DNA from: Utricularia gibba
Lineage: Eukaryota; Plantae; Magnoliophyta
Direction: 5' to 3'
Length of the DNA: 64,000 bases
NCBI GenBank assembly: GCA_002189035.1
Contig: CM007992.1
Coordinates: 1,922,001-1,986,000 of the forward strand
A program made the position numbers and the translations under genes. Under the pieces are notes generated by a model. The model saw only the letters and a list, made by a program, of their open reading frames with translations, was not told the DNA's origin and did not search any database. Positions 33,894 to 48,316 of this stretch are shown here, in pieces (position 1 is the stretch's first letter; every line of letters starts with the position of its first letter).

Positions 33894-34088
33894 AAGAGAA
33901 TTACACAAATACAATTCAAATAGAATTACTAATGCAGAACTACACCACTTTTCAAAACTATCACAAAATTAATCACATTTTTATTTAAAACAATTTAATA
34001 TTATCATTTTTACCCCTAAAACTTTTCTATAATTAATTATGTTATCATACTTATCTTAAAATTACAAATAAAGTTACTAATAATTATC
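33894..34088 (+). repeat. Left TIR of MULE
   Basis: GAGAATTACACAAATACAATT... is the reverse complement of 48122-48314. Confidence 0.85.
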
Positions 34089-34409
34089 TGTAGAGGTTAA
34101 ACAACACTAAATTCACGATTTGGGGCAGGAGGGATTGGAATTGAGAGTTACGGATTCAAGCGATCCATTGATTTTTTCAATCTTCCATCCAATCAGATTT
34201 GGGCAAGCTTTATCACTTCCCTAACTTGCACGGGAGAGAGCAACGTCCACCCATTCAGAATCACTTCTCCAAAAGGTGAATCCATTGTAGGTCTTCCACT
34301 TGCGTTTGAATATCCCATGGCTGGATAATTGTGGGTCCCATATTTTATATTTTAGTATTTCATTTTATTCATTATTGATGAATTTTTAGAGTTCCAAGTT
34401 TGATGAATC

Positions 34410-34742
34410 ATGTCAACTTCTATTGGAGTGACATTATATTGGGGTGATAAATTAATAATAGTTGGTAATCATACTTTTTATGATCAAGTTCCAAAGGATA
34501 TTACATTTTTTTCACGTAACATTAGCTTTGAACGAATGTTAACTCAATTACGAGAAATTATATGAGCATATGATTCATTATAGAAGATCTTTGTGCAATA
34601 TACAGTGATGGATAATGAAAATCATGCAAATCTTTCTTCTATATTTTAGACTGTGATCTTATGCTCACTTATCTCTTTGATATTCAATGGAATGCAAGTG
34701 GGATTAATATGTATATTGAAGAGGTTTAATTGGCAGCTAATG

Positions 34743-34781
<39 letters not shown>

Positions 34782-36780
34782 CTATTATAATATCTTTTTT
34801 TAATTATTGATATTAATCATATGCATTCAAACATTTCCACTGCAGATGAATCAATTAGGAGTGAATCAATTCATCAAGATGATATTGCAAATGCTAAAAC
34901 AGAAAATCAGCCCTCATGGAATCCGAGAAATTTTTTTACGTCTCATATTCCTCCAATATTAGCAAATTCTATTGGCCTTCCCTACCAGGTTGACGATTGT
35001 AACATTGAGAAGGAATTATTTGACACATCTGTCTACTTTGACTCTAAAGAAGCTTTTCAAATGGCTAGTCAAAGGTATTGTATAGAATTAAGTAAAGGAG
35101 CATGTTGTGAAATATAGAACAAAAAATGTATGAGAGGTGCATTGACCACAAGCAAATGAAATGCAGCCTTGCAATTGGAGAATTAGAGGTATATTTAAAA
35201 AAAATGCAGGTTTGGAAGGTTTCTAGGTACAAAACGTTGCATAAATATTATATTGGCGGCAAATTATCTTTGGAGCACAATAATCTGAGAATGAGATTTG
35301 TAGCTTCTAAGATATTTTGTGATACTAAGAGAGATCTTGCTATCACAATTGTTGAGGTTTGACGATTCAGCAAAAATCAATTCAAGTTTGGTATTAAGGC
35401 GAGTGAAGCCTAAATTGCCATGTTTCCTTCAAGTTATGCGAGCAAAAAATCTAGGTAGTATTTTTACACCAATTAGTTATTATATTATTCATTCAATTAT
35501 TATGATATTTTATTCATCTTGAACACTAGTTTTCATGATTCTACCATGTAGGTATTATTGTTGAATACATGGTAGAATCATAGAAGCATTGTCAATCAGT
35601 TATTACAGTTGATGTGACACATTTGCATTTAGATTATCAATACAAACATATTATTGCTACTCCTCTTGATGCCAGTGGTCATATTTTGCCATTAGCTTTT
35701 GCTTTTGTAGATGATGAATCAAAATATTCATGACATTGGTTTCTTGATCTCCTTAGCACACATATTGTTCAATGACAGTGAAAGACATGCCTCATATATG
35801 ATCGAGGCTCTAGTTTAATAGGGGCTCTACCCTATATTCCCGTATTTTATGAATTTGAAGGTTGTTATCGGTTTTGTATGCAGCATGTGATATCCAACTT
35901 CATGGATAAATTCAAGAATTCTCATTTGAAAAGCATGGTATGGTCAGCTACATATGCTGAAGATATAAGCATGTTTGACATTATCATAGAAAATATTTGG
36001 AAAATAAATGAAGAAGCACATAAGTGATTGAAGAAGATCAATCCAACACAATGGATATTTGCTCATGATGGTGATGCAAGGTATGCTCTTTTATATCCTT
36101 ATTTTTAGTTATTATAATAACTTATATCAATTATATAAGTATGGATATGCAACATCAAATTGATCAAAGATTATGAATAGTGTACTCAGAGGTGCTCGTC
36201 GCCTACCTCCTACAACTATTGCACATGCTACGCTTTTGCATTGTCTATGTTACTTTCAAGAACATTGAGGAGAAATAAATCGTTTGAAAAAGGAACGACA
36301 TCTATGGGTAGAAAAAAATTCACTTGAGATGTAGTCGGTGGGATAAAAAAGCTACAAAGTATTATGTTCGTCCATGCCACACAAATACTAGGGCAACATC
36401 TATAGCTGCTCCAAGTAAGCCAGGTCATGGCCCTCGGGCTAACAATGTTAGTCTGAAAAACCAATCATGTACATGTGGCAAATGGTTAGTATAAGATCCC
36501 TTGCTCACACTCAATGCAGGTAATCATTTGGAAATTATTTTATAAATATTTCATATTTCAAATTATTTATTGTTTTATCTTTTTTCAGGTTTGCAATTAC
36601 TTAAAAGTAAATCCATGTGAATATGTGTTAAATGATTTTAGTATTGAAATATTAGAAATTACATATTCTTATCAATTTGAGTGTCTATTAGAGGAATCAT
36701 GTTGGAAGGTTCCTTTTGATCTGACTCACAATCCCTATTTCTGTTTGCAAACAAAAGTTGGTAGAAAGAGAGCCAAATGA
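34410..36780 (+). pseudogene. mudrA: MuDR-type transposase remnant
   Basis: VTLYWGD N-terminus; FDSKEAFQ..RYCI; KHCQSVITVDVTHL..ATPLDASGHILPLAFAFVDDES..WFL; FCMQHVISNF; SWIM-like SCTCGKW...PCSH. Many stops. Confidence 0.85.
34746..34780. repeat. (AT)n microsatellite
   Basis: 35-bp uninterrupted AT dinucleotide run. Confidence 0.95.
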
Positions 36781-38221
36781 TGTCCATGTGAAATGGATCG
36801 AAGGTGTCGCAAGAAGGACAAGGAAAATATTATTGATGGAATATGATATATTTTATAGATTTTGCTTTTGTTTTTGTTTTGTTGGAATATCCTTTCTTAG
36901 TTTGTATAAAAACTCATCTTATATCAATCTGCTAAACATCAGACATGCTTTTGTCGTTTGTTGTTATCTTGGGATTATGAATACTTTTTTTTATAACCAA
37001 ATCTAATAATATATCAAACTATTATTTTGTACTACGTACTTAATACATCAAAGAAATCCAATTGTGTCCAAATAATAATTCATAGTAATTAAGAATAAAA
37101 AGTAAATAACATATTAATCTATAGGGGTGTTGGCATTTGTGACCTAAAATTTTGAAGTTTTAGCATTTTTGACCCATAACAAAATGATCGGTTCGACATA
37201 GTTGACCTGAATCACTACTGGTTCTGCATATGTGACCCAAAATATTTACAAAATAATATATTTGACCTGTAAAAATTTGATGCATGACATATTTGACCCA
37301 TAAAAAATTCAGTTTTGATACTTTTAATCCATAAAATATTATAACGGGGCATATTTGACCCAACGAAAAGTTATAAAGTTAACAACAGAGTCAGTTTGAC
37401 CCAATAAGTTTACTGTTGGTCCAAGTTTAGTGTTCAGTTGGTATATTCAACCCAATAATTTGGCATATTTGACTCGTACAGTTTAATAAATTGACATTGT
37501 TGACCCTTAAGGTTCGTTAAATCTGCATATTTAACCCATAAAGTGTGACAAATTAACATAATTAAATCAATAAGTTTAGCGAATTGACATAAATAACCTA
37601 TAAAGTTTTTCAAAATTTTAAACAAATTGAATACTTTTTCAAATAAATATTGATCAATAAGTGCCTTGTAAACATGGGCACAACAGTCAATCTGAATATC
37701 CATCATGTCAACCCACTACGATTCGAACATGTGATGTCGTTGCAAAGTGAACTTAAGATTATTATAGACATTTTTATAAATCAGATTTATTTCTAAACAT
37801 ACGATAATATGACAGATGCAACAATTACAAAAAAAATTTTTATAAACATATGATATATGTTTATTAAAATATAAATCATGTAAATATGTTATTTATTAAA
37901 CCATATAATAAATATGAAAGTTTTTTAGTTTTTAATTTTATTAGCATTCGATCCTTAGTTATACTTTGGATAGAGCATATATTTTTATTTTACTCATTTT
38001 AATTAGCATTCGATCCTTGATTATGATTCGAATTGAGTGCATATTTTGTATTTTAATATTGTTATTAGCATTCGACACTTAATTATGATTCGGATCGAGC
38101 GTGTATTTCTTATTGCAATAAACCATGGTTTACGCATAAACCATGCCCGTATGGCCTTGTCGCACTGCTGGGTGTGTATACGGGCGTGGTTTACGCATAA
38201 ACCACGCCCGTATGGCCTTGT

Positions 38222-38430
38222 TGTAACGACCCGCGACCTGTACCCTAGACGCTAGGCCATTACCGACACCATCCACGCCCTGGGTTCCCCTCATCAAAGG
38301 AGATGGGCTAGGAACATGTATTTGGGTGCATGCTCCCTCGCCATGCTACTTCTCCTGGACACCTCCTATCGCATCCCCTTGGTAGCAAAGTTTAATTTAT
38401 TAAAATAAGATGACCAAGGTTCAACACAAC
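38222..38430. mobile_element. Truncated Tekay/chromovirus-like LTR end
   Basis: Begins TGTAACGACCCG, loosely similar to the 46267 LTR. The other end was not found. Confidence 0.45.
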
Positions 38431-38815
38431 CAAAGGAAAACAAGGAAACTCCCAACTATCCTGTTATGGGTGAAAATCGGTCTTCGAGATGGGGCCGATT
38501 TTTGGGTTATAAATGCGATTGGGAATACCGTGCCTTTATGCTTATGGAAGGACATATTATATATTAATCCACCTAAAGGCTATAAAACTAGGTGTTCTAA
38601 AATGTAAAAAAAATTCAAGCAGTGCAGGGTCAAGCAAGTAATGACCCTAAAATATGATAGGAACAAACAAGTTAGGCTTTCATTGGTGTCCCTAACTTCT
38701 ACTTCAATTTGACTCAGCAAATGATCTCAGCAAAAATAAGCAACCAGATCCCTAGTGTAGGTGAATCCAAGTAGAAGAGAAATGACATGATAGAAAAATC
38801 AGGTATAAATGATAT

Positions 38816-38999
38816 TTAACAGAAGAACATAGAGTTTCTAACTTTTTTCTCAAATAGAGGCATCCGAGAAACAACCGGAGCCAAAGTTGTACTGCTGGAA
38901 CCACCCACCTTGGCTAAAGGATATTTTCCAATTTTGCTCAAACTTTATCAACTGACTCAGTTGTGCTGCCGCCAAGTTAGCATAAAAAACAGGACCCAC
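38816..38999 (-). pseudogene. Captured last exon of an AGO4/6/9-clade Argonaute, frameshifted
   Basis: VGPVFYANLAAAQLSQLIKFE...SFSQGG then, in a shifted frame, MPLFEKKVRNSMFFC* (stop 38816-38818); matches the AGO4-clade C-terminus (VAPICYAHLAAAQ..F.KFE...SSHGG...NSMFFC). Confidence 0.82.
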
Positions 39000-40354
39000 T
39001 ACATAATCATATTTATCAATTGAAATGTTCAACAATAGCAACCAGGTGAATAAGAAGCAAATGCAACCGATTTTCCAGTTTTGCTCAACAGATTGTTCAG
39101 CATCACTGATGCCAAGGAAAACTATCATTCACAAACCAACCGATTTTTTGCACAAAAGTTCAACAATAGCAACCAGGTGAATAGGAAGCAAATGCAATAA
39201 TGCAAAGATTGGTATTATAAAGAAAAGGGGAATGGGTCGGCACTTCTGCTGCTTTCTTGCTTGCCTCTACATCGGGAAAATTCTTTCCGTTTGTTGGTTA
39301 TTAGCGGCATCCCGAAAACAGAATGAAGCGAAAAAATTCACAAAAGCCATACCTTAAGAGCAACTTCACGCTGATAGGATACAAATCGGTTGAGGACAGT
39401 CAGTTTTTTGAAAGGCTACCAAGCGGGGTTTTCGATGAGACAATGCCTGTCAACAGATCGATATCTGTCAAAGGATCTGACAAGAGCGGTATGGCTCAGT
39501 TTGAAGAGTAACCGAGTAACGGCAGAATGGGCGGTGATTGTCTGAAAAGCAAAATCATAGCACAAGTGCAAAAAGGTCGGTCGGGCTGACCTCCCCTATA
39601 AATAAAAGTAATCATAATGGAGGGAGGATTGGATCCGAAGCCTCCCACTTGTACTTTTTATCACTACATCCCACTAGTAAAAATCTTCTTCGGCGAGCTC
39701 CGATAGCTCCGTGGTTTTTCAATCTTACGGTAGTTTCCAAGTAAAAATCCTCGCCTACCCTCCCCCTCTTATTCCCATTAACCAAACCGTACAAAATCAT
39801 GAAACACATAGGAAGGTACGGAATTTCCCGATCGCACCTTTCACCCGAAAATCCTTCACAAACATCGATTTTCACCCGTAACACACGCCTTTCTGTTGTG
39901 TGGGAATCACTTCTCCCAATCTCTCATTAGTTTGCCTTCACCCGTAAGAGGAGAAGAGGCTCATCCCCAATTCAATTTAGGGTCAAATATCAAAAATAAT
40001 TTTTTTTAATATTTTAATAATTAAATATTTTTTTAATAAAATATTATTATTATTGAACCGGGTTCAATTATGTAGGTTAAATATACCAAACCGGTAAACT
40101 ATTTGGATCAAATATGTCAAAATTGAAATTTTATCAAGTTAAATTTATTATTATTAAATGGGTGTATTCTACAGTAACAATTCATCAAGTTAAATCCATA
40201 GCTCAAATACATCAATTCATCAAACTTATGGGTCAAATATGCCCATTCACGAAACTTTATGGATCCGTTATGCCTCGTTATGAAAATTTCTAAATTCGTT
40301 ATATTCTAAATCTATAATTTTTAGGTCATATATATAATTGTCTCGTTCTAAAAG

Positions 40355-41230
40355 ATCAATCATTTTTTCTCTATCCACTGCAATATAACATTACCAACCA
40401 AATTTACAAATCGCATCAATGATCACTGAGGTCAAAACACCATCTGGATGCCCATAACAGAGAACTACAGAAATCTGTCGCACAAGCATAATGAAAAAAA
40501 AAGAAAATTAGGATCTTGACTCACCAAAGCGAATAGTAATCTACGTATTCCCGAAATCTAAAGAAAACAATATAAAAACGGCTTACTGGGAAGCCAGAGC
40601 GCTACAGAAACAACAAAGCAACCCAAATGCACGATGCATCGGACAAATCCCTACGCCCACGACTATCAAAGAACCTAAAATAATGAAGTGATTCGCTTCC
40701 CCCCCCCCCCCCCCCCCCTCCCAGTGGAGAATGAGTCGCTATGGCCGGCGGTAGTGTGGGCCCGCTACCTCGGAAAGTCAAGAGAGAGGACACCGAGATC
40801 CGCTACAGAGGAATTTCCCCGTCGCAATCCCCTCGGTATCCTATCGACCCTACGGAGCTTATTCCTCCTGTTTTGATTTAGGGGAAATAGGCAATTTGTG
40901 AAGATTTGATAGGAATTTTGAAAACTATTACAAGAAATACGTTCTCGCGGCAGCAGCACAAGAACTTCAGGAACTCAAAGACGCAGGACAAGAACAGGGG
41001 ATCAAAGTTCAGGAACACTAGAGACAACCAAATCCAGGGCTCAGACCAACCCCAAAGATTGTGTTCATCCATGGGAGGAAGGTAAGTAGAGAGGAGTAAA
41101 AGCCCACAACGATGCTTACCAGAAACCATTCAATTTCAAGAACTGCTCCTCCTAGAGCAAATTTATTTGCAACTGTTTCAAAAAGCGTACAAATTGCTGT
41201 TGCCATCCAAGAAAAGAACACACACTAAGA
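40355..41230 (-). other. Putative 5' leader (with 147-bp GT-AG intron) of the kinase gene, displaced from its CDS
   Basis: Donor G|GTGAGT at 40524 and acceptor TTGCAG at 40378. The exon runs into GTTCTAAAAG, which also precedes the kinase leader at 45021-45030. Confidence 0.55.
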
Positions 41231-41376
41231 ACGAAACACATGCCTGAGAGCATGTTTTGTATCTTATTCACATGACACAATACTTGTATAATACAAATCT
41301 ATGAACACAAAGGAGGATCAGCCGCGCCGGCAAGATGAGGGAGGATTGGATTCACTGTGGGAGGTGGTGAAATGGT

Positions 41377-41685
41377 CTAATAAGTAGGTTGATAGTAATA
41401 AAAATAGCGCGGAAGAAATCCCTGCTGCCATTGCTCCCGGACTTCGTCTATCTTGATGCTCGCCTCTGGTTCCTTAGCCGAGCCGAAGGAGACGATGTCG
41501 ACGGCGCAAAGCTTCCGCAACTGATCCACAACCACCACTGGGTCCACATCCCCGGTGATCGTCAGCTTCTTGGCGCTGGCATCAACAGCGATGGACTCCA
41601 CACCCGAGATACTGGAGACCTTCTTCATCCCTTTCCGCTTCATTTTCTCGTTTGAGTAGTCGAATTTCAGAACAATCTTCTTCAT
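41377..41685 (-). CDS. HMA-domain protein, HIPP39/RATX1-like (102 aa, no CxxC, no CaaX)
   Basis: MKKIVLK...KRKGMKKVSSISGVESIAVD..KKLTITGDVDPVVVVDQLRK...DIVSFGSAKEP matches the HIPP39-type HMA; uninterrupted ATG-TAG ORF. Confidence 0.75.
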   Translation of the reverse strand: MKKIVLKFDYSNEKMKRKGMKKVSSISGVESIAVDASAKKLTITGDVDPVVVVDQLRKLCAVDIVSFGSAKEPEASIKIDEVREQWQQGFLPRYFYYYQPTY

Positions 41686-41736
41686 TTCGTTAGGATCGGA
41701 ATTTTGAATCGGTGCCTGGAAAATGCTTTCCCGACG

Positions 41737-41900
41737 CTAATTTATAGCACAAAGTCGACTGAAGAAAGCGCACTACTGAATAGAGTCGTCTGCAAGTTTC
41801 CGCTACGCGTCTTGTTGAAGACCGTCAACCAGATAACATTCCCATGTACGCTTCGTGGAAGTAAGTCAAGCAGCCTCTCAGAAACTTCTTGGAGCCCACG
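41737..41900 (-). promoter_or_regulatory. Putative proximal promoter of HMA gene
   Basis: CTATAAAT ~55 nt upstream of the ATG; TTGACT (W-box, 41867-41872), TTGACG (~41823), CGCGT (~41805), AACGTGG (~41897). Confidence 0.45.
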
Positions 41901-42369
41901 TTTTAAATTTTTTTAATTATTTGAATTTCCTTAATTGAGTATATTCGAAATTATGTATTATGATCCATATTAATCATCACGATTTAAAAGATATTACATC
42001 AAGTATATTCGAAAGTATGTATTATGTTTTTATAGGTTGATTTTTTTATTTTAGTTTAGATTTAATATATTTACACAAAAAATAAATTAAGAACTCAATG
42101 CAAAGAAGAAGAATCACATGGTTCTATGGATAAGATTAAACGACAGCGTTTTACGAGCCCAATTTATTAGTGTTAAGATGGGCTTTATAATTATGGGTGT
42201 CATATCTTGATAAGGAATGGTTCCAGCCACACGTTCCCATAAGATGAGACCAAATCCATACACATCTACGTGCGCTCGTAGTGCTTGTGGTGCTTCCGGT
42301 CGATCATTTCCGGGGCCATCCAGCGGTAAGTACCAGGATCATCGGAAACAGTATCACAAGAGTTCTCCT

Positions 42370-43790
42370 TAGAGATGTTCATGGGTTGGTTCTATGCCAA
42401 CCCAGAACCGACCCAACTATAAAGACAAAGACCCGAAACCAACCCAGACCCGATTAAGAACCGATAGACCCAGAACCATGGTTCTTTATCGGTTATGGGT
42501 CGGTTCTAGGTCCTTACCGATTCCGGCTTTTACTAAAAACATTGAATTTAAAAGCTTTCAAACAATATAAAAATAATGTATTAAAAGTCACAGAAAACTG
42601 ACAAACACTAGGAAAAATGTTCATACAAATTAAAAGGACTACGTTTAGTTTTGATACAAAAGTAGAACTATGTCGCACACTTGAACACACATGTTTCTAA
42701 AAATCACATTGAAAACAAACGTTTACTGTAATTAATTTTAATACTCCCAGAATCGCTAATGTGGGTGACTAGAACAAGAAATGCAAAATTAGGCACCCGT
42801 ACCCAAAATTTAGGAATTGCGCAATTTTTGAAAGTATTCTTAATTTTCAGAAATATAAAAATTTTTGGGTGCATTAATTGGAATATAAAAATTTGAAAAT
42901 GAAATGATTTTATATATCCTAAATACTACAAAATAATTTTAATAAATAAAAAATATTCCTCTGTCTTTTAGATCATTTTTCAGACACCCATATTGCCTCG
43001 TATGGATGTTTAGAAAGAGTGATTTTCAGGCACCCACGTCTCTTATATGGGTGTTTGGGAAGGAGTATTTGAGACAGTTTTTCAGACACTCTCTTCCATC
43101 ATGTGGGTGCCTCGAGAGGGTGTTTGGAATGAGAGTTGGACGACATCTACAAAATAATGCATTGTGTGGGTGTCTGAGAAAAGTGATTTCCAGGCATCCA
43201 CATCTCTTATATGGGTGTCTGAGAAGGAGTATTTAAGATAGTTTTCTATACACCCACTTCCCTTATGTGAGTGCCTCGGGAGGATATTTGCGAGTCTATA
43301 ACAAAATTCCAAGCAACATGAAAAATCAAAAGACTACTCAAATCCACAAACTAGAGATGTTCAAAAGACCCACCCAGACCCAGAATCGATCGGAACTGAC
43401 CCAGTTTTTCGGGTCGGTTCCACCCAAATCTACATGGCTATCTTCGTCGCTGCAAAGCCCCCACTTATTTCTACAAATATGGGCCCCATTGTCATTTAAT
43501 TATTTAAGTAATAATAATAATAATAAGTGTTAATAAATAATATGATAAAAACATGCTGAGTAAATCAATAATTATTTACAACTCATGATCCAATATTCTT
43601 AGTGAAAAAATACTATTGGTTCTAAGTCGGGTCTGGATATTTTCCCGTAGACCCAAAATCGATCCAAAACCGACCGGTTCTTCATTTAATACCCAAAACC
43701 AACGCAGACCCAGAACCAGTCAGAACTGACCCGAAAAACTGGGTCGGTTCCGATCGGTTCTGGATCGGGTGGGTCTTTTGAACATCTCTA
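42370..43790. mobile_element. Non-autonomous hAT element inserted in kinase exon (1421 bp)
   Basis: TIRs TAGAGATGTTCA / TGAACATCTCTA; perfect 8-bp TSD GTTCTCCT (42362-42369, 43791-43798); ACCCAGAACC/GGGTCGGTT subterminal repeats; removal restores CEEN-SCD. Confidence 0.93.
42952..43289. repeat. MITE-like insert with two ~110-bp internal direct repeats
   Basis: Units at ~43015 and ~43180 (AGTGATTT.CAGGCA.CCAC.TCTCTTATATGGGTGT...); weak inverted ends AATATTCCTC/GAGGATATT; CAGACACCC motifs. Confidence 0.45.
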
Positions 43791-45030
43791 GTTCTCCTCG
43801 CAAGCAATACCAAAGTCTGCAACTTTGAGATGGAAATCCTCTGTTATGAGGATGTTTGAGTGGATATATTCCATCCCTCTGGCAATGTCCAGAGCCATGG
43901 TTAAAAGCTTCTGAAGAGGGAGGGGTTTTTCCTCAACCTTGGTCAAGTACGATCTCAGAGACCCTGAGGGCAGATACTCTGTTATGATGCCGAGGACTGG
44001 AGGTTTTTGGCATGCCGCCACAAACTGCGGTCATGGGTGCTTATCAGATGGCTCAATCAGTGAACTGGAGTGAGAAAGAAGCGAATGAACCAGTTACCTT
44101 CAACACATTTTGATGGCGGAGACGTGACAAGATGGTGACCTCCCTAGTAAATCGCTTCTCAAAGCGAGAACGCATTGATCCATTTTCATCGTCATCATCT
44201 GGGAATCTGATGATCTTTACTGCAACAGGTTCGCCTTTGTATTTCCCATGGTAGAGATGACTATGTGCGCCATGAGTAAATCTTAGTCCCAGAAATAACT
44301 GTGAAAGATCAACTTCAAACTGTTTGTCCAAAGTTGCTACTGCGCTCACCCTCCCACCACTTTGATCAAAATACTTGCTCCAGCCTGAAGACTCTTTCTG
44401 ACTCTTTGATCTGTCGTTCGGTTTCAGGAAAGGGGAATGAGAAAGAGACCTTGAATTTCTTGAAAACTTCACCTCCCGCGTGGAAGACCTGGTTTCACTG
44501 AAAGACTTGGTCACCCTTCTCTGAATCTTCCCTTCTGGGGCTTGGGGTCGAGAACCTTTTCTGGCTTGAGCGAGCTTCACTGAATGCGTCTGGAAGTGTT
44601 AATTCTGGGAGAGGCGACACTGCCCTCATCTTGTTATTTGCAGGGTTATTGTGAATCTCATCGACATTTGGCAGTGATCTCTGATATAGAAGAGCTACTT
44701 CCCTCCGTGTTTTTGTCACCTGAAGAGGTGAAGAAGAGGACAGCATTCAAGGAGCCATCCGATGGCAAAACGTGTGAGAGAACTTGGTTCTCCTGATCCA
44801 AGAAGCAGCCTCTTCCTCCATGGAAGATCAGTTCCAAAAGCCACTCTGACAAACAAGTAAGTTGATCACAATATTCTCCTATATGCACCAGACTCAAATC
44901 GCCTGATGTTTTCCAATCCCATCACCAAATTATAAGGAAAGATGAATCAACCCCTCCTCCATCAAACTTCAAGAAAGACCAGATGATAAAGCACCATCTG
45001 GATCCCTGCATACACTTGGAGTTCTAAAAG

Positions 45031-48000
45031 GGGGTTTTGGCATTTGTGACCTAAAATTTTGAAATTTTAGCATTTTTATCCATAACAGAATGACCGATTC
45101 GACATATTTGACATGAAACAGTACCAGTTTCGTATATATGACCCAAAATATTTAAAAAATGATATATTTGACCTGTAAAAAATTTGTTGCATAACATATT
45201 TGACCCATAAAAAATTCAGTTTTGATACTTTTGATCCATAAAATATTATAACGGGGTATATTTGATCTAACGAAAAGTTATAAAAGTTTACAACGGAGTT
45301 TGTTTGACCCAATAAGTTTACTGTTAATCCCGCGTTTAGTGTTCAGTTGGTATATTCAACCCAATAATTTGGCATATTGACCCGTACAGTTTAATAAATT
45401 GACATTGTTGACCATTAAGGTTTGTTAAATCCGCATATTTAACCCATAAAGTGTGACAAATTAACATAATTAACCCAATAAGTTTATCGAATTGACATAA
45501 ATAACCTATAAAGTTTTTCAAAATTTTAAACAAATTGAATACTTTTTCAAATAAATATTGATCAATAAGTGCCCTGTAGACATGGGCACAATAGTCAATC
45601 CAAATATCCATCATGTCAACCCACTACAATTCGAACATGTGATGTCGTTGCAAAGTGAATTTAAGATTATTATCAACATTTTTATAAATCAGATTTATTT
45701 CTAAACATACGATAACATGACAGATGCAACAATTACAAAAAAAATATTTTTATAAACATATGATATATGTTTATTAAAATATAAATAATATAAATATGTT
45801 ATTTATTAAACCATATAATAAATATGAAAGTTTTTTAGTTTTTAATTTTATTAGCATTCAATCCTTAATTATATTTTGGATGGAGCATATATTTTTATTT
45901 TAATCATTTTAATTAGCATTCGATCCTTGATTATGATTCGAATTGAGTGCATATTTTGTATTTTAATATTGTTATTAGCATTCGACACTTAGTTATGATT
46001 CGGATCGAGCGTGTATTTCTTATTGCAATATTTTTATTAGTATTCGATCCTTAAATATGATTCGGATCGAGCATATATTTTTTATTTTAATATTTTTATT
46101 AATATTCGATCCTTATGTATACTTTGGATCGATTGAATATTCATTTATTTTAAATCTTATTTAGCTTCGACCCTTAGAAGCAATTTAGATGGTGTATACA
46201 TGACAATGCCACATGGACGTGGTTTACGCATAAACCACGCCCGTGTGGCGTTGTCGTGCTGCTGGGTGTAACGATCCTCCACGACACCCTAGGCGAGAGG
46301 ACCTTTACCACGCGCACTTGTGGTAGGGTTGCACAGCACACTCTGCCTAAGGGGCTTCCCGTGCTGCGCGTCCAACGCGTGCTCAGTACCACCTCACCCG
46401 TATGCTCCTTGCCTTGCTCGCTCGCACACGGGTCATGGGCTGAGGGAGCTATAGTAATGCAAAAGAACCTGACTTTATTCATGACGATAGAATACTAGTC
46501 CAAGAGGAGGAGAGAAATAGTGCAAGAATCATAGGAAAAACATGCAGGAAATGAAGTTGCGCTCTAGCCCGCCTTACTGCTCCCGACTTCACTACTTGGC
46601 TGCTCCACCCTCGCCATCCGCCCCTCCTATCCCGTCCAATGCCTCATCCCCGGAAGTACCTACATGACCAGTAAGGGGTTAGTCCTATGCAACATGAGTC
46701 CTATGCGCAATGACGAAGAATTTGAGAAAACAGTGCTTGGTGCGATCACGGTGCAGTCTCGAGGTTCCCCCTTTTTATCCTCGACGGTCGATGCCCCTTG
46801 ATTGAACCCTGAGGTTCCTCTTTGGTTGGATTTTCAGCCCTGTATGCCCGAAGGCTGATATGCCCGAAGGCCCTTGAGTGGCATGAGTCCCACGCAAGCG
46901 CGTTGCCTTTGGGTTGGGGTGGCCATCTCCCCTTCCCTCCCCTTGATTGCATCGATCTCTATGACCCTTGACTCATGTTCTATGCCTCTGTTACATTCAG
47001 TACCATGACCTATGCCCTTGACACATTGAACACCCAAGTTAGTCATTAAACCGTATGGAAATCTCCTTACCGGATCGAAGCGTCTCCTTCCCCCACTCTT
47101 ATGGACGTTCGTCTAGCCTTTTGTTGTCTTGAGCCCTTCAGCCTTGCGCCTTCGTGGTGTGGAGAGTGGGGGAGGAAGGAGAGCTTCGATCCTTCCCCTT
47201 ATATAGAGGCTAACCTCCCCCCTTGTATGGGTGTTTCCCCTATCTTCGCAGATTTGGTCCCTTGGATTGAGGGACTTTCCCCATTGACCATAACTTCCTT
47301 ATTTGATCCCCCTAGATTTCGGCAACTTCCCTTGACTGAATCCTTGTCATATCCTGCTCAATCTTGCCATATTCCGTCTACTGGTCCCATCCGCTCATGT
47401 TGTGACCAAGTCTCGTGCGCAATCTTGCACGCTAGTTTCCTTGTGATCTCTCGACCCAGGGCTTCCATGTGGACCTAAGTCAAGTAAGGATGAGGGATAG
47501 CATTGGTACCTTGTTTTTGATATCGTTACAAACTCCCCCACTTAAAGAAGTTTCGTCCCCAAAACTTCATCTTCCATGAATGTCAGGTACCCTGCTTTCA
47601 TGGCTGTTTCCTTCTCCCACGTAGATTCTTCTATTCCACGCCCCATCCATTGCACCTTTACCCACCATGTCGGTCTTCGATTCACCATGGTGATCTTGCA
47701 GTCCAGTACCCTTAGTGGCTTGTTCTGGTACGTTAGGTTCTCTCTGAGCACGACGTCATCTGCCCTGATTTCCATATCTGGCGAGGGAACATGTCTCCTG
47801 AGTTGTGAGATGTGGAACAAATATTCCAAATCGGTAAACTATTTGGGTCAAATATTCCAAAATTGAAATTTTATCAGGTTAAATTTATTATTATTAAATG
47901 GGTGTGTTCTATAGTAACAAAAATCCGTAGGTCAAATACGTCAATTCATCAAACTTATGGGTCAAATATACCCATTCACGAAACATTATGGGTCCATTAT

Positions 48001-48073
48001 GCCCTTTTATGAAAATTTATAGGTCCCTTATATTCTAAATCCATAATTTTTAGGTCATATATATAATTGTCTC
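45031..48073 (+). mobile_element. Non-autonomous MULE-like element E, copy B
   Basis: Same termini as copy A; flanks GTTCTAAAAG (left) and TTAATGTATA (right); centre replaced by a Tekay fragment. Confidence 0.82.
46267..47820 (-). mobile_element. Tekay-like chromovirus: 3' LTR (46267-47530), PPT and chromodomain end of integrase, truncated
   Basis: TGTAACG...CGTTACA LTR; AAGTGGGGGAGTT PPT; FHISQLRRHV...LTYQNKPLRVLD...VKVQW...EESTWEKE. Confidence 0.85.
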
Positions 48074-48121
48074 TTAATGTATATAGTTATAAAGATGATA
48101 AAATAAAGTAAAGATATAAAG

Positions 48122-48316
48122 GATGATTATTAGTTACTTTATTTGTAATTTTCAGATAAGTATGGTAATATAAATAATTATAGAAAAATTTTGGGAGTAA
48201 AAATGATAATATTAAATTATTTTAAATAAAGACCTGATTAGTTTTGTGATAGTTTTGAAAAGTAGTGTAGTTTTGAATTGGTAATTCAATTTTAATTGTA
48301 TTTGTGTAATTCTCTA
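48122..48316 (-). repeat. Right TIR of MULE
   Basis: Reverse complement of 33894-34088 with roughly 22 mismatches. Confidence 0.85.

Follow-up and report, generated by a model that had tools for sequence, protein, structure and literature searches.

A circularly permuted copy of two host genes between two related transposons in Utricularia gibba

Layout of the locus

The DNA analysed, referred to here as the window, is a stretch of 64,000 nt from Utricularia gibba (GCA_002189035.1, CM007992.1, forward strand, 1,922,001-1,986,000). Assembled contigs from four public runs of the same species, namely X1 and X5 (DNA) and X4 and X8 (RNA), were aligned to it. About 4.7 kb of host sequence from two genes (a 4.68-kb stretch) sits here between two related transposons, with its halves swapped. 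On the minus strand, the leader, ATG and coding sequence of a kinase (45020-42192) come first, followed by an HMA ORF (41685-41377) and then by non-coding sequence as far as 40355. The 4.68-kb stretch is flanked by two complete element copies, termed B and A, and is not enclosed by one pair of terminal repeats. The sequence facts given in an earlier note on this DNA were all confirmed at their coordinates. The features are as follows.

37114-37123: left outer 10-bp direct repeat, TTAATCTATA, adjoining the left end of B
37124-40344, plus strand: element copy B, a non-autonomous TIR element with a 10-bp TSD; L arm 37124-38236, interior 38237-40078, R arm 40079-40344
40345-40354: inner 10-mer GTTCTAAAAG, B side, adjoining the right end of B; the native locus has one copy
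40355-41376, minus strand: region downstream of HMA and upstream of the kinase (X4 records 8 and 9; X8 records 16 and 17)
41377-41685, minus strand: intact, intronless HMA-domain ORF of 102 aa (Pfam HMA)
42031-42191, minus strand: AT-rich stretch with the HMA-side breakpoint; the X5 DNA contigs reach about 42030 and have nothing in 42031-42191
42192-45020, minus strand: truncated and decayed copy of a Raf-like kinase gene, from the rest of the leader to part of exon 2; ATG at about 44809, exon 1, 73-nt intron 44097-44025, partial exon 2 ending at 42192
42370-43790: hAT-like insertion of 1,421 bp in the kinase exon, with ends TAGAGATG...CATCTCTA and an 8-bp TSD, GTTCTCCT
45021-45030: inner 10-mer GTTCTAAAAG, A side, adjoining the left end of A
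45031-48073, plus strand: element copy A; L arm 45031-46269, interior 46270-47818, R arm 47819-48073
48074-48083: right outer 10-bp direct repeat, TTAATGTATA, adjoining the right end of A

The inner 10-mer occurs exactly twice in the 64-kb window, each time touching the end of a repeated element, and the two copies match at 10/10 positions. The outer repeats match at 9/10, and their pattern, TTAATSTATA, is found nowhere else in the window.

The HMA and kinase gene copies

The 102-aa ORF matches Pfam HMA at 28.3 bits (cut-off 24.8), and its closest relatives in the protein databases are 64% identical. It is without a CxxC motif and without a C-terminal CaaX; it has one Cys, and the C-terminus reads QPTY. 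The predicted product is an HMA-fold protein and not a canonical HIPP. In run X4, a window-type HMA RNA contig is present at a depth of 758. Variants that distinguish the native HMA gene from the copied one lie at 41408, 41445 and 41481. The HMA copy remains open and appears to be transcribed.

In the kinase copy, Pfam recognises pieces of a kinase domain. The best matches of these pieces in the protein databases are 60-70% identical, and the nearest named relatives are Raf-like/HT1-type; the narrower label 'RAF36-like' of the earlier note is putative. The reading frames are broken, and the gene is truncated exactly at 42192. Compared with the native gene, 30 nt at about 43856 (the GVIHRDLKP loop) and 36 nt at 44516 are missing. 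As the 30 nt coding for GVIHRDLKP are present in native contigs and deleted here, the copy is, to judge from its sequence, a pseudogene and a dead kinase of the Raf-like (group C, HT1/STY-type) kind. The hAT-like insertion is also specific to the copy, with DNA and RNA contigs passing directly from 42360 to 43790 and skipping 1429 nt.

The non-coding region that separates the two genes had been read in the earlier note as kinase leader over the whole of 41230-40355. The native mRNA contig bears this out for 40684-40355, which is kinase 5' leader. The rest of the claim does not stand, as the interval also includes HMA 3'UTR. A single abundant HMA RNA contig covers 41631-40726, and therefore part of this 'leader-like' region is the 3'UTR of the HMA gene, which extends over 41376-40726. 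The poly-G run at 40699-40718 is longer than the native one, and the contigs leave out 14 letters at 40699/40706. A 147-nt GT-AG intron had further been proposed at 40524-40378. The GT (40524-40523) and the AG (40379-40378) are indeed in place; the splicing is not observed, since both RNA contigs that cover the interval (X4 record 8 and X8 record 16) retain it. As a used intron, the interval is thus ruled out.

The native locus and the permutation

The earlier note had claimed that the cargo is circularly permuted, and it had predicted a joint made of the leader exon, a single CTTTTAGAAC, and then TCCAAGTG and onward to the ATG. This joint was found in the same species, both as DNA and as RNA. 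In each of the runs X1, X5, X4 and X8, one contig passes from 45020 to 40345 (back by 4676, with 10 shared letters). The carriers of the joint include a spliced mRNA contig of 1,723 nt, which leads from 40684 across the 10-mer and on into the kinase CDS. As these contigs join 45020 to 40345 via a single GTTCTAAAAG, the species has an intact locus made up of the HMA gene, the intergenic/leader region and the kinase CDS. The stretch 40355-45020 is a DNA-level copy, circularly permuted relative to the native order of HMA gene, about 1.25 kb of 3'UTR/leader, and Raf-like kinase. The opening of this copy lies in the kinase 5' leader, at a 10-bp site, and the copy is closed by an end-joining junction that links kinase exon 2 (42192) to sequence upstream of HMA.

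The divergence of the cargo from the native gene is about 3.4%. The DNA contig X5 record 10 contains the 73-nt intron, which is missing from the X4 mRNA contig. Since the copy has kept this intron, it is DNA-derived, and a retrocopy is ruled out. Also ruled out is the possibility that the order in the window is the ancestral one: the copy is truncated and decayed, whereas the joined form is spliced and intact.

The HMA gene had been placed upstream of the kinase in the native order, and this is strongly suggested by variant-bearing contigs that link the HMA CDS to the kinase leader piecewise. The contigs taken as native-type that make up this chain are X5 records 12, 11 and 10 and X8 records 19, 18, 17 and 16. 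The linkage stops short of proof, as the whole distance is spanned by no single contig. Cross-species synteny speaks neither for nor against the native order, since the genes compared are only distantly similar, at 55-70% identity, and are unlikely to be orthologues. The kinase is absent within 10 kb on either side of the Populus HMA locus and the Olea HMA loci, and HMA is absent within 10 kb on either side of the Platanthera and Asparagus kinase loci.

The two broken ends had been thought to join in AT-rich sequence at about 41950-42190. The kinase-side break can now be placed exactly, at 42192|42191, where native contigs run on with 13 letters that encode IQAAY and are kinase coding sequence. 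The adjoining 42031-42191 is either further HMA upstream sequence or filler. The junction is supported in real DNA by X1 record 3, a contig of 772 nt that spans 41451-42221 and crosses the junction with 1 mismatch. Run X5 is a candidate for an accession without the copy.

The independent X1 record also bears on the proposal that the arrangement is an assembly artefact, in which the native allele and the repeated elements were stitched together. The surroundings of A and B would lend themselves to such an error, being a nest of transposons in which repeats of about 1 kb are 94% identical, and among the matches listed, no contig bridges 40344/40345 or 45030/45031. Besides the junction-crossing record, however, window-type and native-type variants occur together in X1 at several sites, and the copy has lesions of its own: two deletions (30 and 36 nt), the hAT-like insertion and an expanded poly-G run. 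Such an artefact is hardly credible.

The flanking elements are mosaics

No transposase ORF is present in A or B, and they are therefore non-autonomous. Their 10-bp TSD is observed twice; their TIRs are weak, and the ends share no more than a G.G start and a core of 10 nt, TGACCTAAAA. Both are putatively Mutator-like, a superfamily assignment made from TSD length alone. The label 'MULE' for the outer 14.4-kb element comes solely from its 194-bp TIRs and 11-bp TSD, as Pfam gave no match on the decayed ORFs of this element.

The interior of B, which is unrelated to that of A, contains a nested TIR element at about 38461-39885. The interior of A is the 3' end of a gypsy-type retroelement, with a chromodomain-like ORF (a weak Chromo match, E=0.0095), a polypurine tract and an LTR of about 1.26 kb. 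When aligned with each other, the two interiors (1.5-1.8 kb) score no better than shuffled sequence. Had A and B been born as twins, a later replacement could also have produced such differences.

The arms that the two copies share fall into classes of divergence, of which two parts of the L arm are listed here.

37124-37423, plus strand: outer L arm of B, high-divergence class, 31/299 = 10.4% against A
37424-38120, plus strand (45334-46030 in A): low-divergence tract, 26/696 = 3.7%; candidate crossover or co-copied tract

By maximum likelihood, the change point between the classes lies at about 37424. The R arms of A and B are 9.4% diverged and belong to the same class as the outer L arm (p=0.78). 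The 0.7-kb tract stands apart in divergence, with p=8e-5 against the outer L arm and p=9e-4 against the R arm, and no difference was observed between the tract and the cargo compared with its native gene (3.7% against 3.4%; p=0.71). All the classes are similar in GC content and in their share of transversions. A and B thus appear to be mosaics and not twins, which is a new finding of this analysis. Subterminal regions that evolve about 3 times faster than the inner arm might give the same pattern from identical twins, although this leaves the unrelated interiors unexplained. The agreement between the tract and the cargo could also be a coincidence, if the two parent elements were merely most similar in the tract.

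Origin of the composite

We consider it about evenly balanced whether the composite arose from a resident element that underwent homologous recombination or repair with another element, now lost, which was formerly in the kinase leader. The lost element, E', would have belonged to the same 10-bp-TSD family, and its insertion into the leader would have duplicated GTTCTAAAAG. As no element is seen in the native kinase leader in any of the four runs (X1, X4, X5 and X8), E' is only inferred. The resident element, E, would have been a member of the family about 10% diverged, with another interior, at the present site and with TTAATSTATA flanks. A single event of homologous recombination or break repair could then have joined E and E'. 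This may have been the ends-in (Campbell-type) integration of a donor fragment that had been circularised or, as an equal option, a two-ended repair synthesis that left E' into both of its flanks and was completed by end-joining. Two-sided invasion is awkward, since there is only poor homology on the right side of the tract. The crossover, or the co-copied homology, would lie within the 0.7-kb tract 37424-38120. Chimera B would then take its outer L arm from E and, beyond the tract, its interior and R arm from E'. In chimera A the sources would be exchanged, with E' supplying the outer L arm and E the interior and R arm, again with the tract between them. The donor flanks would thereby end up between A and B with their order swapped. 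Later, the kinase copy would have degenerated; the HMA copy kept its open frame and is apparently transcribed.

Ends-in (insertion-type, Campbell-like) homologous integration is classical for cut plasmids in yeast. There, as at this locus, the homology is present twice in direct orientation, once on each side of the insert. Each repeat combines donor and resident sequence, and the donor, circular or permuted, is cut open inside the homology. The direct duplication and the hybrid repeats are seen here in the change point at about 37424 and in the outer L and R arms, which are of one class. In contrast to the yeast case, the homology is a diverged transposon pair in a plant genome, and the circular intermediate is hypothetical. 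To our knowledge, there is no documented plant case with exactly such a product.

The main rival, which we regard as unlikely, is a composite insertion at TTAATSTATA by alternative transposition of the maize Ac/fAc type. In this process, left and right ends from sister chromatids, or the reversed ends of two neighbouring elements, are inserted together; the element and its flanks are re-replicated, the forks are aborted, and the broken ends would have been joined at 42192. Such a course predicts the topology seen, with direct-oriented copies outside, swapped flanks inside, one junction and an outer TSD of family length. Alternative transposition and its products are documented, with a junction microhomology of 0-4 bp (PMC4270019), and Mutator-like VANDAL21 elements have been proposed to undergo it as well (PMC12312487). 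However, the sister-chromatid form needs copies that are identical at birth, and the interiors of A and B are unrelated; the arms, too, show two divergence classes, only one of which fits the age of the cargo. In the two-element form, the donor would be two different elements within a single TSD, and would be as complex as the product.

Twin elements at birth are also predicted by a tandem duplication that extends from upstream of HMA to the middle of the kinase and includes one leader element, followed by macrotransposition via the outermost ends. Macrotransposition by direct-oriented elements was reportedly described in maize by Huang and Dooner in 2008. The final order would be the same, the inner 10-mers would be identical and the outer TSD would be new, but two rare events are required, and no tandemly duplicated native form is seen among the aligned contigs, which cannot prove absence. 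We take this to be quite improbable.

The inner 10-mer could instead be a terminal redundancy, if an eccDNA of the locus was copied over a little more than a full turn and ended up as filler between two elements that already lay side by side. Copying a circle past one turn would be expected to yield both a permuted order and a short terminal direct repeat, and the capture of filler at breaks in TIR elements has been described (PMC8277862). A redundancy of exactly the TSD length of the family, bounded exactly by the last base of each element, is nevertheless not predicted, and this explanation is highly improbable.

Comparison with known systems

One close likeness is to the maize Ac/fAc composite insertions that arise from alternative transposition (Zhang, Zuo, Wang, Peterson 2014, eLife; PMC4270019). 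These share with the present locus the direct-oriented end copies, the swapped donor flanks inside, the single repair junction and the TSD at the new site. The element here differs in having a 10-bp TSD (Mutator-like, not hAT). The same TSD is found at both inner borders, which implies one donor insertion. Further, the copies are mosaic with unrelated interiors, and not twins as the one-element form needs. The event is also old (about 3.4% divergence) and natural, and does not come from a genetic screen.

A break-initiated and transposition-independent route to cargo-bearing TIR elements has been published as 'gap filling', proposed for the origin of Pack-TIR and Pack-MULE elements (Tan et al. 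2021, Nat Commun; PMC8277862). As in that route, a break in a TIR element would here be repaired from a foreign template, and host gene fragments would come to lie inside the ends with no transposition. The filler in our case would, however, enter by homology with a second element and bring along the ends and the TSD of that element, so that the borders are base-exact and without microhomology. Unlike in Pack-MULEs, the cargo lies between two whole elements and not inside one long-TIR pair, although the TSD length (9-11 bp) fits. Macrotransposons, in which two direct-oriented hAT elements reportedly move the DNA between them (Huang and Dooner 2008), likewise have direct-oriented elements of the same family around host genes, with one outer TSD; their host DNA is collinear with its source, whereas here it is circularly permuted with respect to the native contigs.

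A broken or recombining resident TIR element may capture, in one step, both flanks of a diverged member that sits in a 5' UTR. We propose this route tentatively, as having somewhat less than an even chance of being right. The capture of both flanks of a diverged member through element repair or recombination was not found in the literature searched. If the route is true, a single step would yield a permuted host segment, a pair of chimeric elements and TSD borders exact to the base, and the outer ends of the chimeras could still mobilise the whole unit. If it is general, it would link the 5' UTR preference of Mutator-like elements to the origin of cargo-bearing elements, and deleterious insertion alleles that no longer exist would be preserved as 'fossils'.

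Transposons are already broadly known to duplicate and rearrange host genes, and the locus adds a record of this general kind. It is a natural, read-verified transposon duplication of about 4.7 kb of host DNA, in which one whole gene is still open and seemingly transcribed. The swapped flanks, the swapped TSDs and the mosaic elements still record the route of the duplication. Such records are rare outside maize genetic stocks, and they can distinguish recombination-based from transposition-based duplication. The copy also keeps indirect evidence of an insertion allele in the kinase 5' UTR that is gone from the sampled population.

Structure of the composite and its flanking repeats

The window sequence is plant DNA situated within a transposon nest. 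Two related elements with terminal inverted repeats (TIRs), B on the left and A on the right, enclose a cargo consisting of an HMA-domain gene and the front of a Raf-like kinase gene. Common to both are a left (L) arm, about 1.0-1.1 kb long, and a right (R) arm, about 0.26 kb long, and the homology of A and B ends at exact bases. The features are as follows.

33895-48315: outer element, 14.4 kb; its inverted ends (33895-34088 and 48122-48315; 194 bp each) are 90% identical
37124-40344: element B, about 3 kb, in direct orientation relative to A; 10-mer TTAATCTATA adjoins its left end
40345-40354: inner 10-mer GTTCTAAAAG, adjoining the right end of B
45021-45030: second copy of the inner 10-mer, adjoining the left end of A
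45031-48073: element A, about 3 kb, in direct orientation relative to B; 10-mer TTAATGTATA adjoins its right end

On the minus strand, the cargo (40355-45020) reads in this order.

From 45020, minus: remainder of the kinase 5' leader, then ATG near 44809, then kinase exon 1
44097-44025, minus: kinase GT-AG intron, 73 nt
To 42192, minus: partial kinase exon 2, whose end is broken
Next, minus: AT-rich DNA between the kinase break and the HMA gene
41685-41377, minus: HMA-domain gene, open, intronless, 102 aa
To the second 10-mer, minus: about 1 kb of non-coding DNA

The inner and outer 10-mers are each confined to their two element-end sites in the 64-kb window. As the pairs are swapped between A and B, neither element has a target site duplication (TSD) of its own. 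The composite lies entirely within the 14.4-kb element, which is flanked by an 11-bp repeat, GTTTAATGTTC / GTTTCATGTTC, matching at 10 of 11 positions. Probably, this host is an old autonomous Mutator-like element. Its decayed plus-strand ORFs include a CxC...C stretch that is SWIM-like by eye; a Pfam search of these ORFs gave no match.

The native locus in public reads

Logan contigs from four public runs of the same species (X1 and X5, DNA; X4 and X8, RNA) were placed on 40150-45250. All four runs hold one contig each in which 45020 is joined to 40345, with ten letters common to both sides. Thus, the kinase leader passes through the 10-mer once, just as had been predicted from the sequence, and the copy, truncated at 42192, is almost certainly circularly permuted relative to the native locus, as the earlier note had proposed.

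Of these four contigs, the one from X4 (record 8) is a spliced mRNA of 1,723 nt. It lacks 42361-43789 as well as the 73-nt intron, which a DNA contig (X5 record 10) keeps; it has 36 additional nt at 44516, and another 30 whose reverse complement codes for GVIHRDLKP, the catalytic loop. It follows that the joined form represents the native gene, intact and expressed, and that the window holds a decayed copy, differing from it at 56 of 1,657 positions (3.4%). At 40699-40718 the copy carries a homopolymer of 20 C (plus strand), which exceeds that of native-type contigs from X5 and X8 by 14 nt; contig ends tend to fall at this run. The kinase exon of the copy also carries a hAT-like non-autonomous element of 1,421 bp (42370-43790), with TAGAGATG ends and an 8-bp TSD, GTTCTCCT, which native contigs, both DNA and RNA, lack. 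A perfect 27-nt inverted repeat bounds its right 445 bp (43349-43793), and two 137-nt units at a spacing of 164 nt (42990-43290) occur in many copies across the genome.

In DNA as in RNA, native contigs run beyond 42192 by 13 letters (IQAAY on the coding strand), which places the kinase-side break exactly at 42192|42191, within an exon. On the HMA side, the break falls at some point within 42031-42191, an interval in which X5 DNA, reaching about 42030, has no coverage. The internal junction of the copy is real, and X1 record 3 (772 nt, 1 mismatch) crosses it; misassembly is scarcely credible. A chain of variant-bearing contigs taken as native-type (X5 records 12, 11 and 10; X8 records 19 to 16), together with X1, in which the two HMA variants at 41408 are equally deep, strongly supports a native HMA gene upstream of the kinase leader, with no single contig spanning the two. 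Synteny in Populus, Olea, Platanthera and Asparagus was uninformative.

Among the X5 contigs placed here, those of the kinase are of native type only and none covers 42031-42191, so the composite may be absent from this plant, though contigs cannot prove absence. A second X5 contig at 42192-42360, about 85% identical (26 differences in 169), also skips the hAT-like insertion and is probably from a paralogous Raf-like kinase gene.

The coordinates of the earlier note were right, also for the GT (40524) and the AG (40378). The 147-nt intron it proposed there (40378-40524) is, however, unspliced in both RNA contigs covering the interval. Its 'leader-like' region stands in part: the spliced kinase mRNA extends into 40345-40684. 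Much of the region is HMA 3'UTR, because a single X4 contig (record 9; 906 nt, depth 758) extends over 41631-40726 without a break.

Mosaic elements and the origin of the composite

The flanking elements are mosaics and not twins.

Divergence between A and B by segment
L arm, outer 300 bp: 10.4%
L arm, next 697 bp (inner tract): 3.7%
Just beyond the tract, about 38121-38263: alignable in patches only
Interiors, B 38237-40078 and A 46270-47818: unrelated, with local alignments scoring the same as shuffled controls
R arm: 9.4%

The outer L arm does not differ from the R arm (p=0.78), whereas the inner tract differs from both (p=8e-5 and p=9e-4, respectively) and not from the cargo-native divergence (p=0.71). 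GC content (0.24-0.29) and transversion share (about 27-29%) are alike across the classes, which thus look like two ages rather than two mutation regimes. The interiors hold the following.

38461-39885, in B: nested TIR element, ends TGTTATGGGTGAAAATCG and near-complement; Pfam on one of its ORFs gave no support for an Argonaute terminal exon
46270-47829, in A: 3' end of a gypsy-type retroelement, with a chromodomain-like ORF (weak Pfam match), a polypurine tract and a roughly 1.26-kb LTR (ends TGTAACGA...TCGTTACA)

The B interior opens with a related LTR terminus of about 27 nt at the same L-arm junction as in A, and is then wholly divergent.

In every model, an element of this family would once have sat in the kinase leader, creating the GTTCTAAAAG duplication. 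That site is empty in all four sampled plants, so the insertion allele is lost or rare, as is plausible for 3 kb inserted into a 5' UTR. In outline, this kind of structure is already familiar from composite insertions in maize; the present one differs from these in its Mutator-like TSD length, single shared inner TSD and mosaic elements. The maize-type route, alternative transposition (sister-chromatid or reversed-ends) with re-replication (PMC4270019), yields the right topology but predicts twin elements at birth, and is rather unlikely here. Tandem duplication followed by macrotransposition shares both this merit and this difficulty, and is more doubtful still; a circle copied for more than one turn is very improbable.

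The mosaic elements point to recombination, and homologous recombination or break repair has about an even chance of being the correct reading. A single such event would have involved a resident element, E, owner of the outer TSD, and an approximately 10% diverged element in the leader, E', owner of the inner TSD. B would then combine the outer arm of E with the tract and the remainder of E', with A as the reciprocal; such a mosaic is the expected remnant of one event. It may equally have been an ends-in integration, with a circularised fragment of the donor, or two-ended repair synthesis running out into both flanks and end-joined at 42192. Break-initiated, transposition-independent capture of cargo by TIR elements has been published (PMC8277862).

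Transcription of the copied HMA gene

The 906-nt RNA contig of X4 lies in the minus-strand HMA stretch (41377-41712 and 40726-41376), departs from the window at only 4 positions and agrees with it at 41408, 41445 and 41481. At these three sites X8 RNA has different letters throughout, and X5 DNA does so at 41408 and 41481. It seems, then, that the copied HMA gene is the transcribed one in X4; the kinase contig of that run has a depth of 7. Two X8 RNA contigs skip 120 nt (41252-41371) directly downstream of the HMA stop codon; the skip lacks GT-AG ends and is either a native/copy indel or a non-canonical 3'UTR intron.
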